Shown: positions 34,461 to 64,000 of the stretch, piece after piece
Layout of the letters: the number at the start of each line of letters is the position of its first letter
Position numbering within the stretch: position 1 is the first letter of the stretch
DNA from: Penicillus capitatus
Taxonomy: Eukaryota; Plantae; Chlorophyta
DNA: 64,000 nucleotides
Assembly: GCA_965649825.1 (NCBI GenBank)
Contig: OZ287708.1
Location: 329,411-393,410, forward strand
Direction of reading: 5' to 3'
Position numbers and translations under genes: made by a program
Notes under the pieces: model-generated
Database searches by the model: none
What the model was told of the DNA's origin: nothing
What the model saw: only the letters and a program-made list of their open reading frames with translations

Positions 34461-34649
34461 GATGCCTCCTTGACTATGTACCTGCTGCTTGGTGTAGATG
34501 GAGGCCGCCGCCGTTCAATTTCCTTCCTCGCTGCCCGAACAATCACACGTGTGGCACCGCTACCTGGAGGCCACAGTCGTTCGATCCGCTGCCTTTGTGT
34601 GGATGGAGGCCGCAGTCGATCTACATGCTGCCTTGCAGATCATTGAAGG

Positions 34650-37600: not shown

Positions 37601-37700
37601 ACTGTCGCCTTACCTGCTGCCATGGAGTTCATTGGTGGCCGCAGACGCAATACCTGCCGCCTCGCCGTGGATGCGAGGCGGCTCTCGTCTTACCTGCCGC
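34650..37700. repeat. Minisatellite family 2: about 35 stem-loops GCCGCCTYG-N9-CRAGGCGGC with reused linkers and higher-order repeats
   Basis: Hairpins spaced about 70-115 bp apart; 959-bp-offset duplication (34626-35202 vs 35585-36161); 167-bp units at 36357, 36524 and 36691. Confidence 0.95.
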
Positions 37701-39796: not shown

Positions 39797-39960
39797 ATGC
39801 ATGCGTTTTGTTTTACGTATCTCTATGCGGTGCTGCTAGCGTTGGGCGGATTCATCGGTTTAGCTACCGAAGGCAGGAATGGCTCGCTCGGAGGCGGTGT
39901 GGGTTCTGGCGCCGTGCACAATCTTCCTGCGCACACCAGTCTGCTCTGCTACGTGCCGGG
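39797..39960 (+). pseudogene. TMEM14/FAX (fatty-acid export)-like N-terminal fragment
   Basis: MHAFCFTYLYAVLLALGGFIGLATEGRNGSLGGGVGSG resembles plant TMEM14 MHDFCFTIPYG..GG.IG...GS..SL.GG; the homology is lost afterwards. Confidence 0.6.
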
Positions 39961-43889: not shown

Positions 43890-45182
43890 ATGGCCGAAGC
43901 ACACATGTACACAGAGGACGACTACGGATATCCTGGCAAACCGTGAGTCCTGTGGCCATTTGTCGACGCGTCGCGCGCTGCAGAGCCTTTCGACTGCAGC
44001 TGGACACTCTCCATGAACACAACACGCATGCGTCCGGCTGCAGTCGAGAAGCTCTGCAGCGCGCGACGCGTCGACGAACTCTTCCTCGACTGATCTCTAA
44101 CTCTTCTGTGTGTTCCTAGATTTGACCAGGTGACGTTGACGGAGGTCCTGGGCAGTCACCCGCCCAGGGCCTTCGAAGGCTTGGACGAGGCCGCGCGTGT
44201 GCAGTTGTATTGGGACCTAAAATCCCGAACAACTGCACAGAGGGGTCAAGCGCACATCGATGCGCAGACCCCTCCTGTGCGGTTTGGACCCAATAGGGTC
44301 CAAACCCCACAGCCGCGGCCTGTGCGGCGGGCAAGGGTCCTCTCCAGCGAGGAGAGGAGAGCGCGGCTGGCCCAAGAGGGCCAGCCTGCTGCACCTCCGC
44401 CGCCCCAGCGTGTCCCGCCCTATGCGCCGCCTCCGCCGACCTCCGAGCCTGCCGCACCGCCTCCGTGCAGCCAGCCGCCAGCCCAGCCACCCGTCTCCCA
44501 GGTTGGCGCACCACCGGCAGCCTCTCAGCCTGCTGCTCCTCCACCCGTCTCGGAGCCAGCCCAGGGGCCTGTCGATCCTCAGGCCCAGCCTGCCGCACCG
44601 CCTCCAGTCTGTCAAGCGGCCCAGTCTCCCCAGATGGAGTGGTCTTCTGCGCCGCCAGCTGCGCCGTTTACCCAGCCGCCTGCCAGCTATACTGCCCAGT
44701 CGTCAGCCGCCATTCCCGTCGAGTCTCCCCAGATGGAGTGGTCCCCTGTTCCATTCCCGCAGCCGACCCTCTCTCCGCCTTCTCTGCAGCACAGCCAGAC
44801 CCCCTTGTTCCCTCCCCGACCGCAGGTTTTCTGCATTCCTGCCTCCCCTCCCCCCGTAATTCCGTCTCGTCCCTTACTTTTTTCCCTACCTGCTCTTCCA
44901 TCCCCCTTTCCTAAACGGACATCGCTCTTTTCCCTCCGTCAGCCACCCCCCATCCCTCCCCGTAACTCTATTTTTCCGGTCAGACGACCTGGATTCCCTC
45001 CCCGACCTTTTTTTATGTCTGGCGAGTGCTTACAGATCTGCCCTCCAGCCATCCCGCAGCGACTGTTTTTCATGTCGGGAGAATGTGTAAGTGAATCATT
45101 CTTTTTAAGTCTCTCTAATGCTATGTTTGCTGTGTAGGTTTCAATCCAGAACTGGCCTGTATGGGGGGCCAGACCCTTTTGA
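43890..45182 (+). CDS. Orphan proline-rich protein P2 (354 aa); exons 43890-43942, 44120-45086, 45138-45182
   Basis: Same exon phases as P1 and P3; MAEAHMYTEDDYGYPGKP|FDQVTL...MSGEC|VSIQNWPVWGARPF*. Confidence 0.85.
43962..44075 (+). ncRNA. Intronic 44-bp inverted repeat (pre-miRNA-like hairpin) in P2 intron 1
   Basis: Arms 43962-44005 and 44032-44075 are reverse complements with two G-U pairs and one C-A mismatch; 26-nt loop. The structure is seen directly; an RNA function is inferred. Confidence 0.45.
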
Positions 45183-45569
45183 GTTTTTCTAGCTGTCATC
45201 TTGGGGGTAAAAATTTAAAAAAAAACAAAAGTTTTTATTTTCTTCTGTCACATCTCACATTTTTTATGTGAGATGTCTGAAAAACTTAAAGAACAAAAAA
45301 AAAACAAAAGGGGCTGTTTTCGTTGTTTTGATGTCTCTGCCATTCCACCTTCGCTCTGTTGTGGTTGGCTGTGTGTTACATATATTTGCCTGGAGGCTGG
45401 TGTGTCCTGCGTGCTGTTTTGATGTCATCGGAGGCTGGAGGCTGGGTTATTTACCTGATGTCATTGGAGGCTGTAGGCTGGTGTATACTGTCTCATGTCA
45501 TCGGAGGCTGAATAGCTGGATATTTTACCTGATGTCATTGGAGGCTGTAGGCTGGATATTTTACCTGAT

Positions 45570-45880
45570 GTCATTGGAGGCCCGGAGGCCCTCGTCGATG
45601 TTCTGCTGCTGCCCTGCTGTCGCTGGAGGCCGGAGGCCCGAGGCCCTCGTTCTGCTGCTGCCCTGCTGTCGCTGGAGGCCCGAGGCCCTCGTCGATGTTC
45701 TGCTGCTGTCCTGCTGTTGCTGGAGGCCCGGAGGCCCTCGTCGATGTTCTGCTGCTGCCCTGCTGTCGCTGGAGGCCCGAGGCCCTCGTCGATGTTCTGC
45801 TGCTGCCCTGCTGTCGCTGGAGGCCCGAGGCCCTCGTCGATGTTCTGCTGCTGTCCTGCTGTTGCTGGAGGCCCGGAGGA
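45570..45880. repeat. 48-bp minisatellite (GGAGGCCCGAGGCCCTCGTCGATGTTCTGCTGCTGCCCTGCTGTCGCT), about 6 units
   Basis: Units at 45771 and 45819, for example, are 48 bp apart. Confidence 0.9.
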
Positions 45881-46029
45881 TGATACCTCCGTGACTGTCT
45901 AGCTGCTGATGTTTGCTACTGGAGGACGCCGTGACTATGTACCTGCTGCCTGCTGCCGACCGGAGGATGCCTTGACTGCCTACCTGCTGCCGTCGGCCGC
46001 CCGGAGGATGCCTTGACTGCCTACCTGCT

Positions 46030-46782
46030 GCTTGGTGTGGATGGAGGCCGCCGCCGTTCAATTTCCTTCCTCGCTGGCCGAACAATCACACGTGTGGCAT
46101 CGCTACCTGGAGGCCACAGTCGTTCGATCCGCTGCCTTTGTGTGGATGGAGGCCGCAGTCGATCTACATGCTGCCTTGCAGATCATTGAAGGCGACCGCC
46201 ACACTACTTGCCGCCTTGCCGTGATTGCGAGGCGGCGGTCGTAAAACCTGCGGCCTCGCTGACTGGGGTCGCAATCGTCCACTTGCCACCTTGCCCTGGA
46301 TGCAAGGCGGCTGGCTACCTACCTGCCGCCTGCCGCCTGGAGAACGAAGTCGCTCTAGCTGCCGCCTTGTCGTGGATGCAAGGCGGCATTCATCCTACCT
46401 GCCGCTTGCCGGATGGAGGACGGTGTCGCTTTAGCCGCCTTGCATTGGATGCGAGGCGGCAGTCGCCATATCTGTCGATTGCCGCCTGGAGGAAGAGGTC
46501 GTCCTACTTGCCGCCTCGTTGTAAATGCGAGGCGGCTGTCGCACAAGCAGCGACCTGGATTCCCAGATGCCGCAGTCGTCCTACTCGCCGCCTTGCCGTG
46601 GATGCGAGGCGGCTGTCGCCAAACCTGCGACCTGGATGCCCGAAGGCCGCAGACACAATACCTGCCGCTGCCGCCCAGAGAACGAAGTCGCCCTACTTGC
46701 CGCCTCGTCGTGGATGCGAGGCGGCTGTCGACTTAATTGCCGCTGCCGACCAGAGACGAAGTCGCACTACCTGCCGCCTTGC
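46030..46782. repeat. Diverged copy of the 34470-35200 segment, including about 8 family-2 hairpins
   Basis: Collinear match beginning CTTGGTGT.GATGGAGGCCGCCGCCGTTCAATTTCC. Confidence 0.9.
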
Positions 46783-46949
46783 TGCTGATGATGGCTTTCT
46801 CTGCGTTTGGATGCCTGCGTAGGCGTCCCTACCTGATCATTCGCTGCTAATGGAGGCAGCCATAGGCTACCAGCCCGACCGCTCTGGCTGCCAGTGGAGG
46901 CAGTAATCAGCGGTTTACCTTTTGCTCTGGCCGTCACTAGAAGCAGTCT

Positions 46950-49140
46950 CAGGCGTCCACCCGACGTCTGGCCGCCGCTGGAGACAGTCTCAGGCGTCTG
47001 CCCCGACTGCTGGCCGCCGCTGGAGACAGTTTCAGGCGTCTGCCCCGACGTCTGGCCGCCAATGGAGGCGGTCTCAGGCGTCCACCCGACGTCTGGCCGC
47101 CAATGAAGCCACACAGGCACCCTTCCTACCCTATCGCCGCCGCCGGAAACAGTCGCAGGCGTCCTACCTGACGTCTGGCCGCCGCTGGAGACAGTTTCAG
47201 GCGTCTGCCCCGACATCTGGCCGCCACTGGAGACAGTCTCAGGCGTCCTACCTGACGTCTGGCCGCCAATGAAGCCACACAGGCGACCTTCTCACTGTCT
47301 CGCCGCCACTGGAGACAGTCTCAGGCGTCTGCCCCGACATCTGGCCGCCACTGGAGGCGGTCGCAGGCGTCCTACCTGGCGTCTGGCCGTCAATGGAGGC
47401 CTTTCGACCGCTCTGACTGCCAGTGGAGGCAGTCATGGGCGGCTTACCGACCGCTTTAGCTGCACTGGGGACAGTCTCAGGCGTCCACCCGACGTCTGGC
47501 CGCCAGTGAATGCGGTCACAGGCGTCACCTACCTACTGTCTCGCCGCCACCGGAGACAGTCGAAGACGCCACTGGAGACAGTCTCAGGCGTCCTACCTGG
47601 CGTCTGGCCGCCAGGGGAGACAGTCTCAGGCGTCTGCCCCGACATCTGGCCGCCATTGGAGGCGGTCTCAGGCGTCCGCCCCGACGTCTGGCCGCTAATG
47701 AAGCCACTCAGGCACCCTTCCTACTGTCTCGCCGCCACCGGAGACAGTTCTAGGCGTCCACCCGACGTCTGGCCGTCCGTGGAGACACTATCAGGCGTCC
47801 ACCCGACGTCTGGCCGCCAATGGAGGCGGTCACAGGCGTCACTTACCTACTGTCTCGCCGCCACTGGAGACAGTATCAGCCGTCCACCCGACATCTGGCC
47901 GCCACTGGAGACAGTCTCAGGCGTCCGCCCCGACTTCTGGCCGCCAATAAAGCCACACAGGCGTTACTTACCTACTGTCTCGCCGCCACCGGAGACAGTA
48001 TCAGCCGTCCACCCGACATCTGGCCGCCACTGGAGACAGTCTCAGGCGTCCGCCCCGACATCTGGCCGCCAATGGAGGCGGTCTCAGGCGTCACTTACTT
48101 ACTGTCTCGCCGCCACCGGAGACAGTTCTAGGCGTCCACCCGACTTCTGGCCGGCAATGGAGGCGGTCTCTGGCGTCCGCTCCGACTTCTGGCCGCCAAT
48201 AAAGCCACACAGGCGTTACTTACCTACTGTCTCGCCGCCACCGGAGACAGTTCTAGGCGTCCACCCGACTTCTGGCCGCCAATGGAGGCGGTCTCTGGCG
48301 TCCGCTCCGACTTCTGGCCGCCAATGGAGGCGGTCTCTGGCGTCTGCCCCGACATCTGGCCGCCAATGGAGGCGGTCTCAGGCGTCTGCCCCGACATCTG
48401 GCCGCCAATAAAGCCACACAGGCGTTACTTACCTACTGTCTCGCCGCCACCGGAGACAGTTCTAGGCGTCCACCCGACATCTGGCCGACAATGAAGGCGG
48501 TCTGAGGCGTCCTACCTGACGTCTGGCCGCCAATGGAGGCGGTCTCTGGCGTCCGCTCCGACATCTGGCCGCCAATGGAGGCGGTCTCAGGCGTCCGCCC
48601 CGACATCTGGCCGCCAATAAAGCCACACAGGCGTTACTTACCTACTGTCTCGCCGCCACTGGAGACAGTCTCAGGCGTCCGCCCCGACATCTGGCCGACA
48701 ATGGAGGCGGTCTGAGGCGTCCTACCTGACGTCTGGCCGCCAATGGAGGCGGTCACAGGCGCCCTTCCTACTGTCTCGCCGCCACTGGAGACAGTCTCAG
48801 GCGTCCGCCCCGACATCTGGCCGCCAATAAAGCCACACAGGCGTTACTTACCTACTGTCTCGCCGCCACTGGAGACAGTCTCAGGCGTCCGCCCCGACAT
48901 CTGGCCGCCAATGGAGGCGGTCTCAGGCGTCCGCCCCGACATCTGGCCGCCAATGGAGGCGGTCTCAGGCGTCCGCCCCGACATCTGGCCGCCAATGGAG
49001 GCGGTCTCGGGCGTTCTGCCTACTATCTGGCAACCAATGGAGGCCGTCAGGAATCACTTTTCTGACATCCGGCGGCCGAGAGAAGCCATCAGCGAAGATC
49101 TCTTTCCGACGTCTGGCGGCCAAGAGAGGCCGTCAGGGAT
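46950..49140. repeat. Minisatellite family 3, 42-bp monomer (CCGCCAATGGAGGCGGTCTCAGGCGTCCGCCCCGACATCTGG) with variants; flanked by ~69-bp related repeats at 46850-46940 and 49260-49500
   Basis: Exact 42-bp period at 48905 and 48947; about 50 variant monomers. Confidence 0.95.
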
Positions 49141-51339
49141 CACCTGTGCCATAGAAGGAGGCTATGCCAACATAGTGGACTACTTACGAAGCAAAGGGGC
49201 AGCAACGTATTACCTGCCTCACATCTGGCCGCCAACGGAGGCCTATCAACTGCTTTGACTGACTGCAGGCAGCCATTGGCGGTTTACCTTCTGCTTTGGA
49301 CGTCACTAGAGGCCTACCAACCGCTTTGGCTGCACTGGAGGCAGCCATTGGCGGTTTACCTTCTGCTCTGGACGTCACTAGAGGCCTACCCACCTCTATG
49401 GCTGTCACTGGAGGCCTATCGACCGGTTTGGCTGCACTGAAGGTTGTCATGGCCGGTTTATCTTTTGCTGTGGCCGTCACTAGAGGCAGTCTGGGTGCCC
49501 TACCTTGTCTTTGCTATTGCTGGAGGCCTTCTCTGCGATTGGAAGCTTTCGTGGAGCGTCCTACCTGATGCCTAGCGGCTGCGTGGCGGCCATCATGTCG
49601 AGAAAAATACAATCTGCTGATTGGTGAAAAAAGGCCATTTTTCCTCGCCGACTATGTTCTGTGAAATGACAGATTTGGATGTTTGCTCCGGGTAGCATAC
49701 TGTTTCTGATCAATAAGCACAGATGTAGAAACGAAACCGCAGTTTTTACGAGATTGAAGAACACAACTGTAAAAGCATAAAATGTTCAAGTTACAGCGCG
49801 CTCTGTGGTTGGACGTATCGATAGACCACCGAAAATAGCGAGGAAGAAGATGAAGCTGACGGTGGGGCAGCAGCCATAGTGTGGAACGACGCACTGTGGT
49901 GGCTAGACAGAATACGTGATACGCATTCGCCCATCGAATCCACATCCAGCAGTTCTCTGAGCATTGCGCTCGCGTAGATGCGCTGGAAGGGCACGAACAG
50001 AATCCACGACGATTCACCGTCGGGTTCCAGCACATGGGACACTCTGATAACCAAGGCGATGTGCTCGCGTCTGCAGGACAGTGCCTCTTTGTGAAGCGTC
50101 TTCTCCGTCTCCGTTGAGAGAACCGAGGAGGAATTCGTTCTCTTGTCTAGTCTCAGCTTATCGTCTCCTTGCACGCAGACATCGATGTGATATTGATTCG
50201 AGCAGTGCTTGGCAACACCATCTAACTGTCGTGGATCTTCTTAGCTGCTCGTTCAGTCCGGTCAGAACATTCGCAATTCGGATCTCCGTGCGTTCTCAGG
50301 TTTCCTCTGAGACTCCGATTTCCTGTTGGCGAAAATAAACTTGGAAAGCTCTGACTTCGTCGTTCGTCTTAAGTTCAGCTGCATGGAAGGTGCTGTCGTT
50401 CAACTTTGTCCTTTCGGCACACGACTTCTCTACGTCTGTCGATCTTCAGGGCATCAGGAAGCACATCAAGGACGTGTTATTTATTGACTCCGGTGAACGA
50501 TAGGCGAAGATGTGTCTTCGGAACATTGTCCCGCTGAAGAATCCCTCATCAGGTAAGGAAGATCAAGGCTTCATCCCGACGAGAGTCGCCGTCGCGCGTG
50601 GCGAGTGAATTCTCACTGTCGCGTTCTAAAACAATTGCGACACTCTGCCAATTCGTGTTCAATGCCAACCTTGTCTGAGATTTTACACGGCGAACTCTAC
50701 TGTGAAGAAGGCAAATCTGCCGATTCCGTTTTTTGACTCTCGACTTGGCAGTCCTGACAGAACGAAGAGTACAGGAGACGACCATTCGGACGAGTTAAGG
50801 ATTTTAAACCGCTACACAATTCCAACTTTCGACGATGAAAACAAGAGATTCGAAACTGCGATTTCGCTACTTGGTATCTGCTTATCGTAAAAATGATGCT
50901 GCACAAACAGATGTCTAAGACCGAGCTCAGTCGTTGGTGGGCATGGCAGATGAAGAGCGCAGACTGCGGTCGATTCGTTGCAGGACATCGCGCGCGATGC
51001 TTGGCGCGCGCGAGATGATATCGGACGGTGGAGGAGATGGATCTTCGACCATGGTCGTACGTTCTGAGGTCGGATGGGAGTCTCTGTGTCTGTAGGACGG
51101 CAAGCAAAGGTAGGGCATCGTAATCGGCTGCGATGCCGATGAAATCGAGCTTTTCCTGCCACACCATCGATTAGCCCATCGCCATGTTTGATATGCGTCG
51201 ACCACGTATGAGTATCGCTGTGCGTCCTTCGACGGGGATTTCTGCTACCGGGCGATACCACCTTGCTCCTCGCCACTGACACCAGCGTATCCACGTCTCT
51301 CTTTTGCGTCGTCTGCGAAAACGAAAAAACGGATGCGAC

Positions 51340-52325
51340 GTCGAAGAGAGTGAGAAATGATCGGACGCCTGCCGTTCTCTGCCAGCCACGAAGACGTTCA
51401 TTCTCTTTCGCCAGGCGTTTGCTGGTATTCACCAGTTCCAAAACTTCATCGTTTATATTCCTGTCTTGATGTGACAGCGATGCGCGCTGCTGATCGGCTA
51501 CGGAGAACAATAGAGATTGCCGAGTAACAACCGGGAGCGTGATAACTTTTTTGTCCAAGTTCAGCCTCCAGTCTATCTTGTCGGCTGCGTCGCCCATCGG
51601 ACTGGAGGTCCGCATGAAGCTCTGCGTTTTCTCTTACCTGCAGACGATATCGAATTTCGGCCTCGCTCGCCGTTTTCTTCAGCGTGTCGATATCGTCTTG
51701 CCGTTCGACGATCATGCGATGCCGATCGCCAGCGATCTTCGTTAAGCGCATGACATCTCTCTGGAAATGATGCGCCTTCTCTCTCAGTGTCGCATTTCAC
51801 CTGCAACAGATAGCTTCACTTGCGGAGAGGCACGTGACCGAGGGAGACATTGCACTCAGCAAGAGCGCGTTTTAGCATTGCTGCCTCCTGCTCAGCACGT
51901 TCACGGTCGGCATGGAGAGTCCGCTGCAGCCGGTCGCGTCGGGAGAGGTCTTGACTGAGTTTGTCAATGCGTTCATCAAATTCGCCATTCGCACGCGATT
52001 GAGCTTCCAATCTCTCCTGCATTGATCGGCCAGAGGGACCGGTACCGTGCCGCAAACCAGCCAGCCCACCTGAAGGGACAGGTTCTCTGCTGCTAAGGTC
52101 TGTTTCTCGTCGGCTATTTGAGCGACATCGCGATTGGTCAGCTCGAGGGTGGACTGAATGCGTTTCAGTTGCTCAGCAAAAGCCTCGACTTCTTGTTCTT
52201 TCTTCGAGATCACATGCCGAGCGCTTTCCAATTCGACCTCGCTCTTTTGGCTGTTTGTCTATGGCACGCTTTTTGAATGCGCTGCCCCAACTCTTTACAG
52301 GCACGCGATACCAGCTGCACTTCGA
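51340..52325 (-). pseudogene. Fragmented long coiled-coil gene (possibly centriolar, CEP135/Bld10-like; unconfirmed), 5'-truncated by duplication copy B
   Basis: Heptad-like frames KKEQEVEAFAEQLKRIQSTLE.., QERLEAQSRANGEFDERIDKLSQDL.., IDTLKKTASEAEIRYRLQVRENAEL are interrupted by stops and frameshifts. Confidence 0.45.
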
Positions 52326-52356
52326 GATTTTGCATCGTGATAGGAATAGGGAAAGA

Positions 52357-53646
52357 ATGGATGTGTCGTACAATTCGATGTCGATCCGAATTCTGAAGCA
52401 TGTGTCGAAATGGCCTCTACCGATTTCAAAGACGATTTGCTGGCTGACGATCGCCACGCATGATGGCGACTTCCACTGTGACGATGCATTGGGTGTCTGG
52501 CTCGTGAAGCAGACGGATCGATTTCGCGATGCATCGATCCTCCGAACGCGCGATTCGTCTCTGCTCGACGAAGCAGACGTCGTCGTCGATGTTGGGGGTG
52601 TTCACGATCCACGTCAGCTAAACATCCACGTGCTTCGTTTGGAAAAGATTCTTGATGTCCAGAGACCCTTCGCTTCCATCATGCTGTGTATGGTTTTGAT
52701 GACATCTACAAGAGAAGTGCGTTTTCCGTCCGTCTGATCCGTCCGTCTGCAATGAGAACTGGCAGGCCTCAAGATTCAACCCTCCAGCGCAGGACTCGTC
52801 TATGCGCATTTCGGCATAGCTACAGTAAGTTGTCTCTCCGTCGGGGACGAGGCGTCGTTGTGGTAGGGAAGGAAGTCATTTCCACTATTGCAAAGGATTT
52901 TAAACTAAACGATAAAGAATTGGATGGAGGCGATCCACGAGCACATATAGAGGAATACATCGAAGCGCTTTGCGCCATAGCCCTCGGTACAGACCCTTGG
53001 ATTGCATTCGTTGTCGGTCCGAGCATGTGTGTGGCAAGGTTATCGTCAATGTGTCGCGGGTAACTCGCGGAAGACGGGGAATGCCAGAACTACCTACCGT
53101 GATGCAACGGGGCTGTCAGCTCGGTCGGCCGCGTCCCGTCAATGGTGTCCTGTCTTCTAGCATTGGTTTTCTGCGTGGAGCTGCGTGAGGCGTGCACTGG
53201 AAACAGTGCATCAGGTTCACGAGGGTGGAGAGACTATGTTCCCTGAACGACACTGCCCGTGGATCGAGGTCCTTTCGGAACTCGAATCCAAGATTCTGAA
53301 AGAGGGCCAGATCAAGTTCTGCGTGCACGTTCTTGTGAGTCCATGGTCCTACGGAATCCATGCATCCCGAAGAGGCAGGCGTGCATAGGAGGTGAATGGG
53401 ACAGGTGTTTATATCGTCGAAGCTGTCCCCAATCATCCACTGAGATTCTTCTGTCGCAATCCATTCCCTTACGAATGGGGAGGCTTGTCAGGAGAAGAGC
53501 TTGAGCGCAAGAGTGGGATTGAAGGCTGTCTCTTTGTGAGGAAAATCGATCACATAGGAGCACATCGCACAAGGGAAGGCGCTATTGCTATGGCTCTAAA
53601 AGCAATCGAGATCCATAAATCTCGCGGTGGTTACTACTTTGGATAA
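52357..53646 (+). pseudogene. MYG1-family paralog A2, degenerate
   Basis: Same lesions as A1, plus a +4/-1 indel pair near 52925-52950 and a 1-bp deletion near 53123. Confidence 0.7.
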
Positions 53647-53905
53647 GATGCCTTTGCAGATTCACCTACCCGTTGTCCGATTCAAACTCGAGCCATCCCG
53701 TTCAACATCTACAGGCCACTCAGTCGAGAAGGGAACGGCTTGGGGATAATACGTGGACGATCGATGCAACATTCTTAGCAATCATGCTTTAGAACAGCTT
53801 CACATTCGGTCGCGTCGCAGATGACGATCCCTTAAGTCTTTGATCGTTCTATCAGGCGAATAAAACACAATCGAACCATCCAGTCGTTGGACTGTTCGTC
53901 ACCGG

Positions 53906-55314
53906 ATGCGGATTTCAAGTTTCGTGCCCGGCATACGAAGAGTGCTGCGGCCGTTTTTGAAGACGACACGCGCGTTTTCGATTGTCACGCACGATGGCAA
54001 CTTTCACTGTGACGAAGCCTTAGCCGTGTGGATGCTGAAGCAGACAGCACGATTTCGGGATTCTCCCGTCATCCGAACACGAGATCCTTCACTCGTTGAA
54101 AAGGCGGACGTCACCGTCGACGTCGGGGATATCTACGACCCAGGTTGCTCGATTCAACGTCACCCACTGGCCTGATACAGACGCGTTGATTGATAGACAC
54201 CCTTCGATTCGACCATCACCAGCCGGGTTTCGAAGAGTACTTCGATTCGAGTAAGTTCTGATGCCGTCTCCACGAAGGAGATGACGAACGAATCATTTCA
54301 GATAGACGCCGCATTCAGTTATCGAGCTGCGGACTCGTGTACAAACACTTTGGTATGCCTGGCTACGTGATGTTCGTCGAATACAGAGACGAGAGCGTGT
54401 TTCTGCATCAGGAAGAGAAGTGATTTCTGAAATCGCGAAGGACTTTGAACTGACAGGCGAGGAGATGGAAACACTTTACCAAAGAGTCTATGCAGCATTC
54501 ATCGAGGCCATCGATGCCATGGATAACGGTGCAGATTGCTCTGTTCTATGCTTTGTCTGAGGAGGACTGCCGTGATAGGTTACCCTGAATGTGTCACGGA
54601 TACTTATCGAATGCGTAAAGCTTGCAAGACCTTCAGCGATTGCACAGGGTTGACTGCCAGAGTTCGAAGGATGAATGTTCACTGGCGATCGCCTCCTGAT
54701 GTCACATCCGATGGTCAGTTCCAGAAGGCGGTGGAGTTGTGTGGCAAAGAGTTTGCGGAATTCGTTCTCTACAGAGCTTATGTTCGTCCATCTTTCTAGA
54801 CGAGACCCCTCCCTGCCGACAGTTTGTTTTCTAGAAATACATTCCGGCACGAAGATACGTGCAACGTGCCCTGGAGACCATCTACGACGTTAGCAAACAG
54901 GGCGATATTATGTTGTTGGAGATCGGGTGTCCATGGAACAGATTCCTTCATGAACTCGAGTCTCAGATTCTGAGGCACAACCAAGTCAAGTACTGCGTTT
55001 ATACTGGCGTAAGCAAGCCAACAGTTTCTCTGACGAGCTTCCCAGAGAGGTGACGTGTCCAGGAAGAGGAAAACAGTGACTATCGAGTTCATGCCGTTAC
55101 CGTTAACCCCGATTCGAATACGCCTCGTCTTGGGTTCCCCGACGAATGGAGAGGGTTGAGTGGAGAGAAGCTCGAACGCGTGACCGGAATCGAAGGTAGC
55201 TCCTTTGTGCATCGAGGAGGATATATTGGAAGGAATCGCACAAAGGAGGGTGCCATCGCCATGGCCCGAAAGTCCATAGAGATTGCAAGAGGAAAGAGAT
55301 TTGTCACCGGTTGA
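53906..55314 (+). CDS. MYG1: MYG1-family exoribonuclease, paralog B2, apparently intact
   Basis: All B1 motifs and splice sites are retained; the TGA at 55051-55053 lies inside an intron. Confidence 0.85.
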
Positions 55315-56310
55315 TCATGAACGTCATTGATCGTCCGTCAGCTGCCTCGACGAATCTCGATCTTTCGATTTTGCGTTGTGTCAGACGGAGACTGTGTTTG
55401 TGAGTCTTCTTATCGGCGATGAGCAAACTCGAAACCAGGACTGCACTAATGGAGTCGTTTTCGTGAATTTGACAGTTCAAAACAGGCACACGGCCACGAC
55501 TTCACACACACCAACATCTTTCTTAAATACCCAGGCAATCATTACGGTCTTCACAGAACACTGTCTAATGGTAATTGGCTCGACTCTCTCCCGCTGCATC
55601 ACATTCATGTCTCTTCGAAGTTTCACAGAGATTTGGCCAAATGGCCATTCCTTGGCGGAGAGTATAAGTACTAATGTGGAAACTGGAGTTCACATTTTAG
55701 CTTCTGCTTCCTGGAAAATCGGGAGTTCTGCATCACAGAAGGTTCTTCGAATCAACTGCGGTCGGTTGAATTTAAATGTCGACGAGAACATCCGACTGAC
55801 TCATCGAATGGACGATAAGCTTATCTGAGAACTTTTTGCGTCGCAAGAGTAGCAAGTCTGTTTCCACGTGTCCTTCAGATAGACGTTGTGGGTTCTGTCA
55901 ACAGGTTACTGAACATGCAACCCAACTTTTGGACGAAGAGCTGCCCGTTGGAGGACCGTCCGCATCGGAATGTGGTGGTAGACCTTACCTGCCGGATCTC
56001 GATATCCAAGAAAGAAAACGGGCGAAGTTTTGCGTGCCCTCGCATTGAAACATGACATCTTCAATACCGAGTCGCTTGTCGCAGCATGCAACGCTACGAC
56101 GAATAAAAATGAACGAAACATTCCTCTTGGATGGTTAAGGAGATTTGGCGAAAGAAGTCGTCATGGATGTCTCAAACCTGATGCTGTCTTCGAATTCGCA
56201 GAAGTGGCCAAAATCGCACCTGTTCTCGAACAAGATGCGGATTCTCTGAGAGAACTGGTGTGTGTCCTCCGTTCAAGAATCATCATGCAGACACGCTGCA
56301 ATGCGCCGAG

Positions 56311-56560
56311 TTGGATGCTGCCAAGACAGTCAGTTCACAAGGTGAGGTGGCTATTGCAGAGAGCAAATGTGATGGGACATTCGTGTGGTGGCTGGTCTTC
56401 ACGGATTCGCGTCTTCGCTGATGGATCTGGACTTTGCACCAGCAGGACGTGAATTTGTAGCCGATGGCTTTGATCGGATGGCTGAGACTGTTCGAGAAAG
56501 AGCAGCAGGAAGAAGAGATGTCTACTTCATTCCTCGCATGTCACGACGGTCTTCCTGCTG
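56311..56560 (+). pseudogene. DCAF13/SOF1-like fragment, copy 2
   Basis: MDLDFAPAGREFVADGFDR; the splice acceptor TTCAG of copy A is TTCAC here. Confidence 0.62.
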
Positions 56561-58287
56561 TTCCGGTCTTGATGCAAGCAACGTATGTCTTTTGCGTCAG
56601 AATCAAACGCAATGGCACCGTGTGCCGTGTTTACGTATCCCGACTTTTAAGAACAGACAGTTTCCACAGGTTTTCGACCATTGTCGACTCTTTAATCGAA
56701 ATACCTTGTACTTGCTGCCCGTTTCGCGTTCCTGCTTCTTTTCCACGTCAGTGATCGACTTGGCGTGCATCTGCAATCATCACTAAACATAGGCAAATAG
56801 GCTTTTTCGTGCCGCGTCCGATTCAGAGATATTAGCTCCTGTTTCGTCTGGCATCATCCCCTTTGTCTCGTCTCGATTTGCCTGGCGAAACATCTAGGAG
56901 TGGACAGTCGCATTGTTTTGGCACCCTTGTTCATCGCGAACAAACTCTCTCATCCGAAATCGTTTTCGCGTCTACAGAGCGCATCGTTTAATGTGTGTTC
57001 TCTCGCACTGTTTTCTGAAGATGCCTTGTTGTGCGAATGTCTTTCGGACTCGATCCAACGCGTCGACGGTGGCATGCATCTCGGTGTTCAATGAGGAATG
57101 CCGCGTCACAGGTCCAAATGGCAGAGCCACGAGCAGGCATTTCTACAGTGTCTGTCTTTCACGCGTTCCACGGAGCATTTGCCGCACGAGAGAACATCGC
57201 CAGCGCTGACGACATCTCCTGGAACGCCCCACGCATGCAAAACACTCGGAGGTAGTTAGTCTTTCATTACAGACATTTTCCAGAAGTGTCTCAGAACGGA
57301 AAAACAGACATTCTCCGTCACAGCCCTCATAGCCTCAGAACTCGCCAGACACTAGAACGGAACGGCATGGACGATTCCAACGCAGATGCAGCAGCATGCC
57401 ATCCACTTCCAATGGTAATCCACCACTTTGGTGCGCTCTGCACGGTGGAATACGCCGGAAAGAAAGAAGGCGATGACATTGGATCGCGACTGGCTTCGAC
57501 CGCGATCAACTGCGCCATCACGCAGGTTGCTCTCGAAACTGTCTGATCGATGGCTTCGCAGACAGAACAGCAATCTTGCACAGCAGCCACACAACGCGAT
57601 AGAACTTCGCTAGTTGGAGCGAACGGCGTCTTCCAAAGCACTCACTCAACGCTATGCGCGAGCACGAACCGAACGACGACTCCGCGGCCGTCTGGTTCTC
57701 GCAGGGCGTCGTTCGGTTCCGCCTTCCATGTTCGAGGGAGTTAGGACCAACGACAACCCCTCAAACCGATACGCGTTACACCGCGCAGAACGCTCTGCCG
57801 ACGGCGTTTGCGACGGAGACGCCCGAAAAAGACGGCCGTCCAGACGCAGAGTCCGTGCCGATCATGCGAACGAGAGAGACCGCCGCTTTCCTCTGCCCAG
57901 GCAACGCGGAGCTGAGCCGGGCGGTTTGCCGTTCGGAGATCCGCGTCGGAACAGCCGCAGAGAACGCATGCGCGTTACACTCAGAGCGGAACATGCCGAC
58001 AAACTGTAAAGAACTTTGACTGTAATACACTTCGCAAAGCTTCCAGAAGCGCACTCCCTTTTGCGTCGCGCATCCGACGACAGTGCTCTGCGTTTCTGAA
58101 CGTCTGGCAGCCGATCGTTTGTCCAGCGGCGCATGCAGCGCCGCCGAACGGCCACGGTTCCCAGCCGCCACCCGCAGGTCGCGCTCGGCAACCGACGCGG
58201 CTATAAAGGTCCTGTCACAGACCCTTCCGCACTGTCGACTTTCCTTGGCGCCTTCCTGTTTTCCGGAGTTCAAGCAAAGACGAAGAT

Positions 58288-59467
58288 ATGGCCGAAGCAC
58301 GCATGTTCACAGAAGACGACTACGGATATCCTGACAGACCGTGAGTCCTGTGGCCATTCGTCGACGCGTCGCGCGCTACGGAGCCTTTCGACTGCGGCTG
58401 GACACTCTCCATGAACACGCATGCGTCCGGCTGCAGTCGAGAAGCTCTGCAGCGCGCGACGCGTCGACGAACTCTTCTTCGACTGATCTCTAACTCTTCT
58501 GTGTGTTCTTAGATTTGACCAGGTGACGTTGAGGGAGGTCCTGGGCAGTCACCCGCCCAGGGCCTTCGAAGGCTTGGACGAGGCCGCGCGTGTGCAGTTG
58601 TATTGGGACCTAAAATCCCGAACAACTGCACAGAGGGGTCAAGCGCACATCGATGCGCAGACCCCTCCTGTGCGGTTTGGACCCAATAGGGTCCAAACCC
58701 CACAGCCGCGGCCTGTGCGGCGGGCGAGGGTCCTGTCCTCAGAGGACAGGAGAGCGCGACTGGCCCAACAGGGCCAGCCTGCCGCTCCGCCGCCTCCAGC
58801 GCGCCCCGCTCCGCCGCCGCCTGCAGTCTCAGAGCCACTGCCGTGCCAACATCCGGCATCACCAGCGCCAGCGCCAGCCGAGACTCCTCAGGCCCAGCCG
58901 GCCTCGCCGCCAGCAGCACCCCAGCCGAGCGCGCCTCTGCCGATGGATTGGTCGCCAGTGCCGCCGGCAGCTTATTCTCAGGCCCAGTCAGCCGCACCGA
59001 CTCAAGCATCATCGCAGCCACCGTGTCCAACTGTCATGGAGTGGTCATCCTGTCCCTCTCCTCAGCCGACCCCGACAATGCCCGCTTCCGTCACCCAGTC
59101 CATCAAGCCTCCACCTTTCCCCCCTCGCCCACAGGTGTTTTGCATCCCAGCGTCCCCGCCTCCACTTATCCCCTCGCGCCTGTTTAAGTTTTCATTCCCC
59201 TTTTTCCCACCTTCCTTTCCTGTACGCACCTCCCAGTTTTCCTTACCCTGCCCCCCTCCAATCCCACCACGCCCCTTTGTCTTTTCCGTCGGGCCCCTCG
59301 GTATCCCTCCCAGACCGTATTTCCTCTCCGGCCAGTGTGTGCCCATCGGTCCTGCCATTCCAGAACGGCTTTTCTTTCTATCAGGCGAATGTGTAAGTTA
59401 CTCTGCATTTCCTTCTCTCTTTCAATGTGTTTTTCTGTAGGTTTTCATTGAAGATTGGTCTCTCTGA
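58288..59467 (+). CDS. Orphan proline-rich protein P3 (319 aa); exons 58288-58340, 58513-59392, 59441-59467; mosaic of P2 (5') and P1 (3')
   Basis: Intact spliced frame MAEARMFTEDDYGYPDRP|FDQVTL...LSGEC|VFIEDWSL*. Confidence 0.85.
58357..58471 (+). ncRNA. Intronic inverted repeat (pre-miRNA-like hairpin) in P3 intron 1
   Basis: The right arm is identical to that of P2; left-arm changes give two G-U pairs and one A-C mismatch; the stem is extended by a terminal TTC/GAA. Confidence 0.45.
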
Positions 59468-59869
59468 GGGCCTGTTTGTTTAGTTTTTTGAACGCTGTTT
59501 TCTTTTTTGAAAGAAAAATATAAAAAGAAACAAAGATCTGAAAGGGCTGTTTTCGTTTCTTGCTGTTTCTGCCATTCCACCTCCGCTTTGTAGTGGATGG
59601 TTGTGTGTTTTCTGTTTTTACATAGAGGCTGTCAAGGGCCCATCTGCTGTTTTGTTTGCTCGGAGGCTGAAGTGTCCTAACCTGCTGTCTTGATGCGATC
59701 AAAGGCCTGGAGGCTGTCATAGATGTTCTATTTACTGCTTGTTGTCATTGGAGTGCGCCATGGATGTTCTACCTGCCGCTATTGCTGTCTTGCTGGAGGC
59801 CTTCGTAAATCATCTACATGATCTCTTGCTGCTGCTGCTGCTGCTGCTGCTGGAGAACTTCTCTTGCCG

Positions 59870-61600
59870 CGTGGAGGCAGTCGTTTTCGAACTACCTGAT
59901 GCCTGGAGGCTGTGTGGAGGCCGTCTTTTTCGAACTACCTGATCTCTGGAGGCTGTGTGGAGGCCGTCTTTTTCGAACTACCTGATCTCTGGAGGCTGCG
60001 TGGAGGTCGTCTTTTTCGAGCTACCTGATCTCTGGAGGCTGCGTGGAGGTCGTCTTTTTCGAGCTACCTGATCTCTGGAGGCTGCGTGGAGGCTTTCTTT
60101 TTCGAACTACATGATGCCTGGCGGCTGCATGGAGGCCGTCGTGTCCGTCTCACCTGATCTCTGGCGGCTGCATAGAGGCCGTCGTTTCTGAACTACATGA
60201 TGCCTGGCGGCTGCATGATTCCGTCATCAGCGTTCTACCTGATCTCTGGCGGCTGCATAGAGGCCGTCGTGTCCGTCTCACCTGATCTCTGGCGGCTGCG
60301 TGGAGGCTGTCTTTTTCGAACTACATGATGCCTGGCGGCTGCATGGAGGCCGTCGTGTCCGTCTCACCTGATCTCTGGCGGCTGCGTGAAGGCCGTCATC
60401 AGCGTTCTACCTGATCTCTGGCGGCTGCATAGAGGCCGTCGTTTCTGAACTACATGATGCCTGGCGGCTGCATGGAGGCCGTCGTTTCTGAACTACATGA
60501 TGCCTGGCGGCTGCATGGAGGCCGTCTTTTCCGAACTACCTGATGCATGGCGGCTGCATGAGACCGTCGTGTCCGTCTCACCTGATCTCTGGCGGCTGCG
60601 TGAAGGCTGTCTTTTTCGAACTACATGATGCCTGGCGGCTGCATGGAGGCCGTCGTGTCCGTCTCACCTGATCTCTGGCGGCTGCGTGGAGGCTGTCTTT
60701 TTCGAACTACATGATGCCTGGCGGCTGCATGGAGGCCGTCTTTTCCGAACTACCTGATGCATGGCAGCTGCATGAGACCGTCGTGTCCGTCTCACCTGAT
60801 CTCTGGCGGCTGCGTGAAGGCTGTCTTTTTCGAACTACATGATGCCTGGCGGCTGCATGGAGGCCGTCGTGTCCGTCTCACTTGATCTCTGGCGGCTGCA
60901 TGGAGGCCGTCTTTTTCGAACTTCATGATGCCTGGCGGCTACATGAGACCGTCGTGTCCGTCTCACCTGATCTCTGGCGGCTGCGTGGAGGCTTTCTTTT
61001 TCGAACTACATGATGCCTGGCGGCTGCATGGAGGCCGTCGTGTCCGTCTCACCTGATCTCTGGCGGCTGCGTGGAGGCTTTCTTTTTCGAACTACATGAT
61101 GCCTGGCGGCTGCATGGAGGCCGTCGTGTCCGTCTCACCTGATCTCTGGCGGCTGCGTGAAGGCTGTCTTTTTCGAACTACATGATGCCTGGCGGCTACA
61201 TGAGGCCGTCTTTTTCGAACTACCTGATGCCTGGCGGCTGCATGAGGCCGTCTTTTTCGAACTACCTGATGCCTGGCGGCTGCATGAGGCCGTCGTTTCT
61301 GAACTACCTGATGCCTGGCGGCTGCATGAGGCCGTCATCGGCGTCCTACCTGATCTTTGGCCGCGTGGAGGCCGTCGTGGCGGCGTCCTACCTGACGTCT
61401 GGCGGCGGCGGAAAGGCTGTCTTAAGCGTCCTTCCTGATCTCCTGCTGCTACTGGAGGCCTTCACAGCGAATGAAGGCCGTCGTGGCGGCGTCCTACCTG
61501 ACGTCTGGCGGCGGCGGAAAGGCCGTCTTAAGCGTCCTTCCTGATTTCTGGCGGCTGCATGAGGCCGTCTTTTCCGAACTACCTGATCTCTGGTGGCTGC
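59870..61600. repeat. Minisatellite family 4, about 43-bp monomers often as an 86-bp dimer (CTACATGATGCCTGGCGGCTGCATGGAGGCCGTC../CTCACCTGATCTCTGGCGGCTGCGTGGAGGCTGTC..)
   Basis: 86-bp period at 60621 and 60707; about 38 monomers; the array ends with one family-2 hairpin at about 61611-61637. Confidence 0.95.
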
Positions 61601-63699
61601 CGGCTTACTTGCCGCCTTGCTGTGGACGCAAGGCGGCTGTCGCCGACTTTAAGTTCTCTTTTCATGAAATTGCACTTTCTTACTCTTTCTCTGCAGACTT
61701 TGTTGCGGGGTGTATCTTATCCTTCGCGAACCACTGTTTTATCGATTTTGCGCTTGAGATCGCACTTTTTAAAAAAGAATGACCTTTTTACAAGCGTTTT
61801 GAACAATTGAAATCCGTTCTTTTAACATTTATCGAGCGCGAGTTACGATTCGCCGACGGAACGCTGTATGTCGACGCCTTCCCGTCCATTGCCGAAGGCG
61901 TTGTTCTGGCGCGTTACATCTTGAAGCTCGTTACCATCTGCTGGGGAAGACGCATGGCATCCACAGACCTGTTTCCTGCATTCGCTTCCTAGGGACAGGC
62001 GAAGATGACGCGACGTTTACTCCGTGCATGCACCGTCGACCCAGGCTTCGAAACTCGGCAAGCACGTCGCACTGTGCGACTGCGATGAATTGCCTAACCC
62101 TATCGTGTGTTGCGCTACTGCCTGTCTGCAACACCTCGGCTACAAGCTTCCGTCCGATAGGCTTGCACTCGAGTGCCTTGTGTCGGTGTCGTTCAGTGCC
62201 CGAAAGCTTGGAAGCGTGCCTGCGGATGAGAATCGACTTGTGGCGGCTGTGTCGATGAAGTGGCGATAGGAGAGCGAGGGACGAGAGCCTCGTCGGTATG
62301 CATGACTCTAAAGCAGTGGCGACTCGCATTTTCTGTTTACGGATCTATTCGAAACGACACGTTTCGGGCGGTGTCCGATATGGCGACAGCATTATCGCCA
62401 GAAGCAAAAAAAGTCGCTGCACGTTGTCGACTGGCGGCGGCGTGCTCCGAAGAGAGGAGCGCCAGACGAACGATTGTCTCTTCGAAGTTGTTTACAAGAT
62501 GTATCGTTTAAGATTCTGGGCGAACTCCTTTCGTTGTCTGAGGAGAGGAGTGCATTACATTCCGTGCAGTCGGTTGCCCGGGACAGAGAAGACTATGCGC
62601 ATCGTCACGACGAAGGCGTCGTTTTCGTTTCATCGCCTTGGCGGCTCCGCAGTTTAAGCGAAGAACGACAGAGGAGGAACGCGGAAGGCTTCGACGAAAG
62701 CCGAACAGATACAAGAACAGCGTGAACTCTGGAGAGGCTAGAGTCGCGAAGCCGTCGACGCAACGCTCACAGGAACGCGTGTTCGACAGTTCAGATGGCG
62801 TCAACTGACTGGAGCTGTACCATTCGACGCAACCAGCGACAGCTCCAATGCTCCATATTCAAGGCGCGTCTTGCCGATTTGGACGACCCGCCCTTTCGCC
62901 GGTCCGCGTTGCTCGTGTTCGGTGGACCCTTTAACGAGGCCTCGCCTTTCAAGTTCTCGGACAACGACATCAAGATCTACGCGTCTCCGCGTGTCGCTCG
63001 TTCGATTTCGAGTAGATCGTCGGAATTGCATCTGACCGCTCGTCAATTGGAGACGCCTGTCCGAACGCCGATGTCGCCGCCGCGGGAAAAAGATCTCGGC
63101 ATTGCGCGCGTGTACAAAGCGACCTTCGCCCTTTGTCGGAACGTCAGAGACCAGAAGTGAGAATCAAACAACATCCGAAGACGATGAAGAGTGGATCATC
63201 CTCGTGAGCCTGGGGGAATCTCGCCTCCTGAGCTGAATGTGTTTGCATCATCCTCCTCGGGAACTGCCAAAATCCTTTTGGAACACGGACGTTTCCGAAT
63301 CTGCCTCATCGTGCGCGACAAGAATGCAGGCCACTTCAGCGCAGTACAGGGAAATGATTGCGGTGTGAGCGGTGGATGAAGGGAAAGAGCGTCAACACGG
63401 CGCGCGAGCTTGCGGCGACGGAAGTGCTGAGCGTTCAGGACGTCCGAAGGCAATAGGACCGCGAGGACTCCTCGAAGAGAGACCTCTGCAAGCCGTGTTT
63501 CTGCTCGAGAGTTCTGTCGAGACGCCTCTAACGAGCTCCTCGGTGCGAATCTCGCAGCAGATCGACGTCCACCGATGAGGAGTTCGAGGCGTACCGGCAT
63601 CGTTGCCCGACAACAACATAGACGGTCGGTTTACGGCATCTTGTGACGCGTGTCCCTAGACGGAGGCAGCGTTCAATCGGTGTCCAAGTGGAGCAAAGG

Positions 63700-63860
63700 A
63701 TGCGCGAATACTGTTTCACGTATCTCTATGCGGTGCTGCTGGCGTTGGGCGGATTCATCGGTTTAGCGACCGAAGTCAGGAATGGCTCCCTCGGAGGCGG
63801 TGTGCGTTCTGGCGCCGTGCTCTCTCTCTCCTCGCGCACAGTCTGCTCTGCTACGTGCCA
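63700..63860 (+). pseudogene. TMEM14/FAX-like fragment, copy 2
   Basis: MREYCFTYLYAVLLALGGFIGLATEVRNGSLGGGVRSG, then diverges at a CT run. Confidence 0.55.
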
Positions 63861-64000
63861 GGAAGCAATGGAAGACAGGAACAGTCGGCAGAGGAATCGA
63901 CACCAGCCACGCCATCGGCAAGTCTTGCACGACATGCTCACCGCGATCGATCTATCCAAGCTGCCGTCGACGAGCGAGACGAACGCTCCCGCACCGAGTG

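Follow-up and report, generated by a model that had tools for sequence, protein, structure and literature searches.

A probable multi-event mosaic gene in a lineage-restricted tandem gene family of Penicillus capitatus

P3, a member of a tandem gene family in Penicillus capitatus (Chlorophyta), is a mosaic in which a 5' module resembling that of its paralog P2 is joined to sequence of other ancestry on both sides. The data suggest that it is probably the product of several events of non-allelic homologous recombination (gene conversion) among copies of the family. The 5' module (58093-58735, on to ~58830) would have come from an alpha lineage that includes P2, P4, L004b and L002g, and the 3' part from a type-I lineage held in common with P1.

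The window, by which we mean the whole 64,000-nt stretch of contig OZ287708.1 (assembly GCA_965649825.1) that was analysed, contains two tandem units (Table 1), with self-BLAST matches pairing 25882-32574 with 52326-58987 and 37724-40098 with 61639-64000. Judging from the structure of a 41x contig, the second unit continues beyond the window end with block Y, the gene P4, satellites and block Z. The upstream flanks of the two units are 93-100% identical per 200 bp as far as 57750, and block X' is 91-99% identical to X; self-BLAST and flank identity both place P3 in the second copy (B) of the duplication at the position held by P1 in the first (A), in agreement with an earlier sequence-only reading of this DNA. 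The gene on L009 was considered as a P2 allele and rejected, the contig order identifying it as P4, the next gene past the window end. Other genes present are GARS, ATCase/OTCase, PIG-S and MYG1, with introns, and a PGK of plastid/cyanobacterial type whose best relative of solved structure is 7ZY7, with bacterial PGKs next and yeast PGKs after them.

Table 1. Positions of the tandem units, genes, zones of P3 and palindromes in the window
Feature	Coordinates	Strand	Description
Tandem unit 1	25882..52325	.	~26.4 kb, from self-BLAST; MYG1-like flank, P1, satellites, block X (Tmemb_14), block Y, P2, satellites, block Z
P1 gene	31862..33207	+	Exons 31862-31914, 32100-33132, 33181-33207; 370 aa; ORF intact
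P2 gene	43890..45182	+	Exons 43890-43942, 44120-45086, 45138-45182; 354 aa; ORF intact
Tandem unit 2	52326..64000	.	Flank, P3, satellites, block X'; incomplete at window end
Zone B	57594..57750	+	5' edge of family homology; P1/P2/P3 homogenised, 96-99%
Zone C	57751..58092	+	Upstream region; P3 ~80-82% to P1, P2 and P4, best match L004a/b at 86-87%
Zone D	58093..58735	+	Alpha-type ("P2-type") 5' module: core promoter, 5'UTR, exon 1, intron 1, N module
TATAAA box	58202..58207	+	~80 bp 5' of the ATG, within the 58103-58200 patch conserved family-wide
P3 gene	58288..59467	+	Exons 58288-58340, 58513-59392, 59441-59467; intron 1 58341-58512; 319 aa; ORF intact
Intron 1 inverted repeat	58357..58471	+	Near-perfect, 115 nt; centre ~58414, the tract midpoint
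Exon 2 coding palindrome	58650..58723	+	Core 58674-58699 (VRFGPNRVQT); borders the P2-like tract at its 3' edge
Zone E0	58736..58830	+	80% to P1 and to P2; 96.8% to L002g
3' part of P3	58831..59700	+	Pro/Gln/Ser-rich linker, type-I C module, micro-exon, 3'UTR; 78-84% to P1, 62-68% to P2
Satellite array 3' of P3	59866..61600	.	43/214-bp units; differs from the arrays following P1 and P2

The family is a small, uncharacterised and lineage-restricted orphan, of which P3 is a real and intact member. At least 7 copies occur in the same species, 23 cluster representatives are found among 1.84 billion proteins, and GT..AG introns are kept in 14 family copies. The encoded proteins consist of a conserved N module of ~85 aa with one predicted helix, a disordered and hypervariable linker, a Pro-rich C module of ~93 aa and the micro-exon, whose peptide is VFIEDWSL in P3, VFIEDWSV in P1 and VSIQNWPVWGARPF in P2. 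AlphaFold2 with a 16-sequence alignment predicted a mostly disordered chain with a single confident helix (mean pLDDT 57.6). P1, P2 and P3 matched no Pfam family, and the N-terminus, MAEARMFTEDDYGYPDRP, is without a hydrophobic signal-like stretch. An Rfam scan of the window returned nothing at gathering score, and a scan for bacterial promoters and terminators, which is unsuited to a eukaryote, gave no match.

Switch points were located in a three-way MAFFT alignment of P1, P2 and P3, in which P3, at first P1-like or neutral, becomes P2-like at ~58093 and reverts at ~58735. The maximum-chi2 segment, 58097-58813, has chi2 = 204.7, a value reached in none of 1000 permutations (permutation maximum 27.5); inside it 148 of 161 informative sites agree with P2, as against 74 of 321 elsewhere. 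Zone D matches P2 at 96.7% identity (21 mismatches, plus 2 indels that make up 6 gap columns), L002g at 95.3%, L004b at 89.8%, P1 at 75.8-77% and, at 95.5%, P4, which like P3' is a sister-strain sequence, so that some of the differences are allelic. The closeness of 58090-58725 to P2, described earlier from the letters alone, is thus real, as is the presence within it of the TATA box, exon 1, intron 1 and the N-terminus; the tract takes in the first 223 nt of P3 exon 2. The earlier observation of a single-base difference from P2 exon 2 over 58513-58725 is equally correct (58536, G/C, Arg/Thr), and so are the peptides quoted with it. Identity to P2 is 96.4% in the promoter and 5'UTR, 96.5% in intron 1 and 98.7% in the exon 2 part. 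Since coding and non-coding parts are equally P2-like, the similarity of the tract reflects shared descent and not protein-level selection.

Both breakpoints have sequence of other ancestry outside them: upstream, to 57750, identity to unit A is 97-99%, and downstream P3 belongs to the type-I clade with 100% bootstrap. The sequence-only reading had described a P2-type tract within a P1-type locus, which is not supported in that form; only the flanks are P1-type, 57751-58092 and the sequence 3' of 58735 being ~80% identical to P1. Its description of the C-terminal domain, micro-exon and 3' flank as P1-like is likewise right in a relative sense, these parts being nearer P1 than P2 (Table 1) at a P3/P1 identity of ~80%. 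It had attributed the mosaic to ectopic gene conversion or unequal crossover. The mosaic is genuine and has two breakpoints, but its flanks rule out a single unequal crossover, which would have left the 5' flank of one parent and the 3' flank of the other. Upstream, P3 is A/P1-type as far as 57750, with P2 homology starting only at 57594, and downstream X' is 91-99% identical to X.

A repeat-rich locus such as this, with satellites and with paralogs separated by ~14 kb, could in principle lead an assembler to mis-join P2 and P3 reads. We regard such a chimera as exceedingly improbable. The tract carries the mismatches and indels noted above and is not identical to P2, the splice sites and reading frame of P3 are intact, and L002g is collinear with P3 over 58735. 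In addition, a 41x contig of the same species, ctg340397, has the same sequence across both junctions, reproducing 57594-59720 at 99.906% with 2 differences; a single read set may lie behind the window and the ENA contigs alike, and the replication is therefore one of assemblies, not necessarily of samples. Both junctions thus recur in an independently assembled contig, and a misassembly of P3 specific to the window is very unlikely.

Recombination is not confined to P3. Bootstrapped NJ trees of 11-14 family copies, including 7-9x contigs (L001, L002, L005 and L007) that could represent a related lineage or divergent paralogous arrays, are incongruent between the 5' and 3' parts, and the incongruence stays at 93-100% bootstrap with the added copies. 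In zone D the support is 93% for (P2,P3), 99% for (P2,P3,L002g), 100% with L004b added and 0% for (P1,P3), whereas in the 3' part the type-I clade including P3 has 100%, (P1,P3) 72%, and the type-II clade including P2 99.7-100%. The PHI statistic over seven same-species copies is 0.317 against 0.382 +/- 0.003 (0 of 1000 permutations), and significant maximal fragments are shared by P2 and P3 at 58541-58723 and by P3 and P4 at 58126-58268. The suggestion that N- and C-terminal modules are shuffled among paralogs is borne out by these results. L005a is a separate mosaic, in which the N module is that of L001g (97%) but the C module and 3' flank come from the L002g type (95-97%), and L004a and L004b are 97% identical upstream but 77% in the 5' module. 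Breakpoints recur at 58070-58200 among family copies, and the alpha module is found in five genes (P3, P2, P4, L004b and L002g), joined to both 3' types. L004 and L006 were considered as another species; this was rejected, L008 matching the window at 99.8%, and they are same-species paralogs. Non-allelic recombination in the family is pervasive. It also continues between units A and B: at 19 flank sites in about four clusters, the two copies of one strain are set apart from the two copies of the other, which shows that conversion between the units is still going on.

How P3 itself arose is less direct. The simplest account, a single recent conversion of ~640 bp from P2 into an otherwise P1-derived duplicate, agrees with the near-identity of the tract to P2, the (P2,P3) grouping in zone D and the position of P3 within a ~97% duplication, yet we consider it unlikely. 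P3 and P1 gene bodies are only ~80% identical, against ~97% for the duplication around them, while the companion pair P2 and P4 is 92-100% identical; E0 is as distant from P1 as from P2 and close to L002g; and the same mosaic is present in both strains. RIP-like or selection-driven divergence was rejected as an origin of the 80% P1/P3 identity, since divergence in the introns and in non-coding zones C and F is as high as in the exons. Nor is the exchange recent, as had been proposed: P3 differs from P2 by 3.3% in zone D, about as it does from L002g (4.7%) and more than P2 does from P4 (2.2%; 21 differences versus 14), and the mosaic is common to the two strains (99.9%). Five derived sites in zone D are shared by P2 and P4 and absent from P3, four are shared by P3 and L002g, and one by P2 and P3. 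The P3 tract is thus not nested within present-day P2. Zone D alpha sequences are nearly star-like, so that any donor and direction can be proposed only tentatively.

E0 groups P3 with L002g at 100% bootstrap (13 sites in common) and is, in this P3/L002g sublineage, an extension of the alpha module. L002g shares with P3 the combination of alpha and type-I modules. This, the star-like alpha copies in zone D, and the drop in A/B identity from ~97% to ~80% at 57750, lasting until 61639 and accompanied by differing satellites, are all in keeping with replacement en bloc of the P3 cassette (~57751 to 61600, satellite array included) from an unsampled alpha/type-I paralog. The N/C combination would then have arisen earlier elsewhere, with no direct exchange between P3 and P2. 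Taken as a whole, this account is possible, though we do not favour it. No sampled copy matches P3 throughout: identity of L002g to P3 is 84% in zone C and 95-97% in D and E0 but falls to 79% over the C module and 73% over the 3' flank. Exon 2 of P3 is moreover somewhat nearer to P2 (99%) than to the other alpha copies (96%). No single donor accounts for P3, whose nearest relative changes from zone C to E0 and again in the 3' part. Zone B, homogenised within the window, is only 73-91% identical to copies on the 7-9x contigs.

As for direction, P2 and P4 both carry alpha and share 96-100% identity, and P1, at the position corresponding to P3, is non-alpha. It follows that alpha is older than the unit duplication in the P2/P4 lineage, and the distribution favours transfer into P3. 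The reverse, in which alpha would belong originally to the P3/L002g lineage and P2 (and P4) would have acquired it by copying, seems improbable to us. It would fit a zone D in which P2 is nearer to L002g (95.5%) than to L004b (90%), L004b being the nearest relative of P2 in E0 (90%) and the C module (81%), but it requires that both P2 and P4 were converted, or that conversion preceded the unit duplication, and L002g lies at a P2-like position, downstream of X-Y.

We therefore return to a multi-event mosaic as the probable origin of P3; the conversion mechanism, the part played by homology patches, the direction and the number of events are what we infer from these comparisons. Exchange would end in two patches conserved across copies, one being the core promoter (58103-58200) and the other a stretch that encodes RRARLAQ (~58740-58790), and these could act as homology anchors. 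The tract is probably not a fresh copy of present-day P2. The two sampled strains would have diverged only after the events, and the last P2/P4 homogenisation would be of similar or younger age.

Two palindromes lie within the exchanged module. The intron 1 repeat, with arms of ~45 nt and a ~20-nt spacer, is strongly structure-prone as RNA (MFE -96.5, z -8.9) and as DNA (z -9.9). Among 8 full-hairpin copies 92.9% of cells are paired, with 5 compensatory pairs; this count replaces an RNAalifold consensus of 12 introns that gave the inner stem only, the 3' arms being mis-registered. The exon 2 palindrome is kept with compensatory changes in 14 of 14 copies (DNA z -4.1 in P3, -5.6 in P1). Compensatory changes in the palindromes couple amino-acid differences in the protein. 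Fragility of inverted repeats induces double-strand breaks and recombination (PMC3855049; PMC3616911). P3 resembles such systems in having its 115-nt repeat at the tract centre and a second palindrome at the 3' edge; the arms in this family, by contrast, are short, and a breakage role here is putative. One doubtful idea is that the palindromes are putative cis-acting, structure-prone sites that initiate or bound break-induced exchange, forming a built-in device for transferring promoter and N module while C modules stay put. Alternatively, an RNA function may underlie the conservation of the palindromes and their compensatory changes; in one variant the intron hairpin would give rise to a small RNA acting on the entire family. 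The palindrome pair is the most unusual side observation of this work, and could repay closer study.

Module exchange as such is ordinary and known for tandem gene families; the family in which it occurs here is an orphan. Interlocus (non-allelic) gene conversion in tandem duplicates is familiar from human HBG1/HBG2 (gamma-globin), RHD/RHCE and CYP21A2/CYP21A1P. P3 shares with these a sub-kilobase patch far closer to a paralog than its flanks are, two breakpoints in conserved sequence, coverage of intron, promoter and exons together, and flanks in concerted evolution. Unlike them, its family keeps several module types that are reassorted rather than simply homogenised, P3 has no nameable unique donor, and the cassettes are ~80% identical within a ~97% duplication. 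Oomycete Crinkler (CRN) effectors undergo modular reassortment of N- and C-domains, with recombination after a conserved junction motif; conserved N modules, alternative C modules and exchange points in conserved junction sequence are found here too. There is, however, no sequence relationship to CRN proteins, the P3 family has no Pfam match or evident signal peptide, and the LFLAK, DWL and HVLVxxP motifs are absent from P1, P2 and P3. Mosaic formation is also characteristic of the contingency and antigen families Plasmodium var, Trypanosoma VSG and Pneumocystis MSG, where, as here, ectopic recombination yields chimeric members and arrays are linked with repeats or satellites. The P3 family differs in being small, with a mostly disordered product that is not evidently a surface protein, and no evidence of an expression-site mechanism of the var/VSG/MSG kind was found for it.

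These findings document the reassortment of modules through non-allelic recombination in a lineage-restricted family whose tandem units have satellite arrays of their own. Units A and B appear still to be exchanging sequence, in a way that differs from one co-sampled strain to the other. For annotation, members of the P family are not simple orthologs or duplicates, and trees are needed for each module.

The DNA of the window is eukaryotic: it has GT..AG introns and carries housekeeping genes such as ATCase/OTCase, GARS and PIG-S. Its self-comparison yielded three related genes, P1, P2 and P3, which have a common three-exon layout and intact reading frames throughout. The duplication described in the sequence-only reading is present but larger than was thought, consisting of ~26.4-kb units (1 and 2, carrying flank copies A and B), the second of which runs past the window end. 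A 572-kb ENA contig from this species shows unit 2 going on with block Y, a fourth gene (P4) and block Z. Each of P1, P2 and P3 is followed at its 3' side by a private satellite array of 1.7-4 kb (units of 36-264 bp); some repeat families are common to the arrays after P1 and P2, and that after P3 (43/214-bp units) is different.

Genes, tandem units and satellite arrays in the window
Feature	Coordinates	Details
P1 gene	31862-33207	
P2 gene	43890-45182	
P3 gene	58288-59467	exons 58288-58340, 58513-59392, 59441-59467
Tandem unit 1, ~26.4 kb	25882-52325	MYG1-like flank, P1, satellites, block X, block Y, P2, satellites, block Z
Tandem unit 2	from 52326	flank, P3, satellites, X'; window end falls within X'
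Satellite arrays	33636-37728, 45420-49500, 59866-61600	

The three loci were aligned and examined by sliding windows and informative sites, with zones given in P3 coordinates. Up to 57593, P3 is P1-like and P2 is unrelated; in the first 157 bp of family homology on the 5' side (57594-57750) P1, P2 and P3 are 96-99% alike (P4, 92%), after which identity falls suddenly to ~80%, the level at which all three stand to one another in 57751-58092. Across 58093-58735, P3 matches P2 at 96.7% identity (21 mismatches, 2 indels) and P1 at 75.8%, and from 58736 to 59700 it is nearer to P1 (80-83%) than to P2 (62-68%). The 58093-58735 tract takes in TATAAA (58202-58207), the 5'UTR, exon 1, intron 1 and 223 nt at the start of exon 2, and the two-breakpoint maximum chi-square reached 204.7 against a permutation maximum of 27.5 (n=1000). 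The P2-type tract and P1-like 3' part originally read in P3 are thereby borne out, as is the near-identity of 58513-58725 to P2 exon 2, where the sole difference lies at 58536. The mosaic structure of P3 is confirmed as real and robust.

An independent assembly (ENA ERZ25074695) provided further versions of the locus. Its contig ctg340397_41x_l encodes a protein identical to that of the window's PIG-S ORF, matches window 10558-31258 at 99.80% identity and so comes from the same species. A 6x contig of this assembly is 100.000% identical to window 44548-56467, which identifies the window as the low-coverage haplotype or strain and the 41x contig as that of a sister strain. Look-up with an ORF common to both flank copies recovered both units of the 41x contig, whose P3 shows 2 differences from window 57594-59720 in 2127 bp. 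It is very unlikely that P3 is an assembly chimera, a possibility acknowledged when the mosaic was first proposed, since both junctions are reproduced in the 41x version, the tract is not identical to P2, and L002g, a gene copy from another contig, is collinear with P3 across 58735.

Comparison of the flanks of both units in both strains identified 19 sites, in ~4 clusters, that are strain-specific yet common to both copies, which is a signature of recent conversion between the units. The two co-sampled strains differ by ~3% in the copy B flank (52326-57750 versus 7777-13225 of ENA locus L010), ~0.3% in the copy A flank and 0.1% in P3. In the 41x strain, homology between A and B reaches ~500 bp further to the left. 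A MYG1-exonuclease exon has an intact ORF of 151 aa in copy A (28422-28877) and in copy B of the 41x strain. In copy B of the window (54859-55053) the ORF is shortened to 64 aa, which makes the duplicated MYG1 a probable pseudogene in the window's strain.

Eleven, and then 14, copies were aligned and compared zone by zone: P1-P3; the 41x P1', P3' and P4; the same-species paralogs L004a, L004b and L006g; and L001g, L002g, L005a, L005b and L007a from 7-9x contigs. The 7-9x arrays (L001, L002, L005, L007; ERZ25074695) are built of gene, satellites, X, Y and gene, are 76-92% identical to the window, and carry COG4 fragments in place of MYG1; they belong either to a related lineage or, as divergent paralogous arrays, to the low-coverage strain itself. 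Bootstrapped NJ trees of 58093-58735 joined (P2,P3) at 93%, (P2,P3,L002g) at 99% and these with L004b at 100%, with 0% for (P1,P3), whereas the C module plus 3' flank separated a type-I clade (P1, P3, L001g, L002g, L005a, L006g; 100%) from a type-II clade (P2, L004b, L005b, L007a; 99.7%). The 5' and 3' trees thus still conflict with more copies included. PHI among the seven certainly conspecific copies was 0.317 versus 0.382 +/- 0.003 when permuted (0/1000), and maximal-fragment tests picked out P2-P3 (58541-58723) and P3-P4 (58126-58268).

Further mosaics extend the pattern. L005a follows L001g in its N module (97%) and, past a breakpoint at ~59150, L002g in the C module and 3' flank (95-97%). 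Identity between L004a and L004b falls from 97% upstream to 77% in the 5' module, and L005b resembles L002g upstream (94-97%) and L007a in the gene (99-100%). Together with the incongruent trees and PHI, these bear out the proposed shuffling of N- and C-terminal modules among paralogs. Partners change at 58070-58200, a core-promoter patch conserved in all copies, in three independent comparisons, and the 3' edge of the P3/P2 tract falls within a conserved RRARLAQ-coding stretch.

The age and donor originally suggested for the exchange fared less well. In all zones, P2 and its companion from the unit duplication, P4, show 92-100% identity, and the 26.4-kb unit outside the P1/P3 cassettes is ~92-100% identical (flanks averaging ~97%), whereas the P1 and P3 cassettes with their satellites (31325-37724 versus 57751-61639) either share ~80% identity or are unrelated. 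P3 is accordingly no patched copy of P1, and either one of the cassettes has been replaced or homogenisation has affected the flanks. The adjoining 58736-58830 is 80% identical to P1 and to P2, and 96.8% to L002g (13 shared sites, 100% bootstrap). The "P2-type" tract is itself a module type, alpha, of five genes, whose 3' end is type II in P2, P4 and L004b and type I in P3 and L002g. Inside it the relationships among alpha copies are close to a star (differences: P3-P2 21, P3-P4 29, P2-P4 14, P3-L002g 30; shared derived sites: (P2,P4) 5, (P2,P3) 1), and both strains carry the mosaic P3. The exchange is thus not recent, present-day P2 is not a demonstrable donor, and a simple P2 tract in a P1-type locus does not describe P3. 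Since alpha occurs in both P2 and P4 and is absent from P1, transfer into the P3 position is the more economical direction; later P2/P4 homogenisation may make both look younger than they are. P3 may have been patched in place, or its whole cassette may have been imported from an unsampled alpha/type-I copy. The unequal crossover offered as another origin is, as a single event, ruled out by an upstream flank that is A-type up to 57750.

The exchanged module contains two palindromes. Intron 1 of P3 holds a near-perfect 115-nt inverted repeat (58357-58471; 43959-44078 in P2) centred on the midpoint of the tract, 58414, with an RNA MFE of -96.5 kcal/mol (z -8.9) and a DNA z-score of -9.9. It is complete in two module types, others keeping just the inner stem; pairing covers 92.9% of cells in 8 copies, versus 27-42% in slid controls, with 5 compensatory pairs. 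Of the 43 differences private to L004b in the tract, none falls in 58367-58494, the repeat being kept perfectly despite ~10% divergence around it. The second palindrome (58650-58723, core 58674-58699; 32216-32291 in P1) lies in coding exon 2, encodes PVRFGPNRVQT and terminates at the tract's 3' edge. It is kept in 14/14 copies (DNA z-score -4.1 in P3, -5.6 in P1), with compensatory base changes that impose coupled amino-acid changes (RFGPNRVQT versus RVGPNRDQP). Inverted repeats are an established cause of breaks and recombination (PMC3855049), and the two palindromes may act in this way or may have an RNA function.

No Pfam match was found for the family. A protein search of 5.8 billion sequences returned 19 unnamed ORF calls from ENA metagenome-type assemblies, and an exhaustive N-module profile search only 23 cluster representatives among 1.84 billion. 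The protein comprises a conserved N module (~85 aa), a hypervariable Pro/Gln/Ser-rich linker with MEWS repeats, a C module (~93 aa) of FP.RP..F..S-like repeats, and the micro-exon. AlphaFold2 predicts disorder except for one helix, DEAARVQLYWDLKSRTTAQRGQAHIDAQ, exactly the segment distinguishing the P1 from the P2 type. In a more distant subgroup (P0014-P0019; L003) the N module (EITLREVLGSRPPRAF...) is fused to unrelated C-terminal parts, in P0019 one with FMIPATPPPAIPPR repeats, so module reassortment reaches beyond the core family.

The first interpretation of P3 was therefore partly right. Repeated non-allelic homologous recombination among family copies, mostly gene conversion, is the interpretation with most support; in it, exchange tracts would resolve in conserved patches and a promoter/exon 1/intron 1/N-module cassette would be reassorted against linker and C-module cassettes. 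Mosaic paralogs arising through gene conversion in a tandem family are a known phenomenon, met here in an orphan family.
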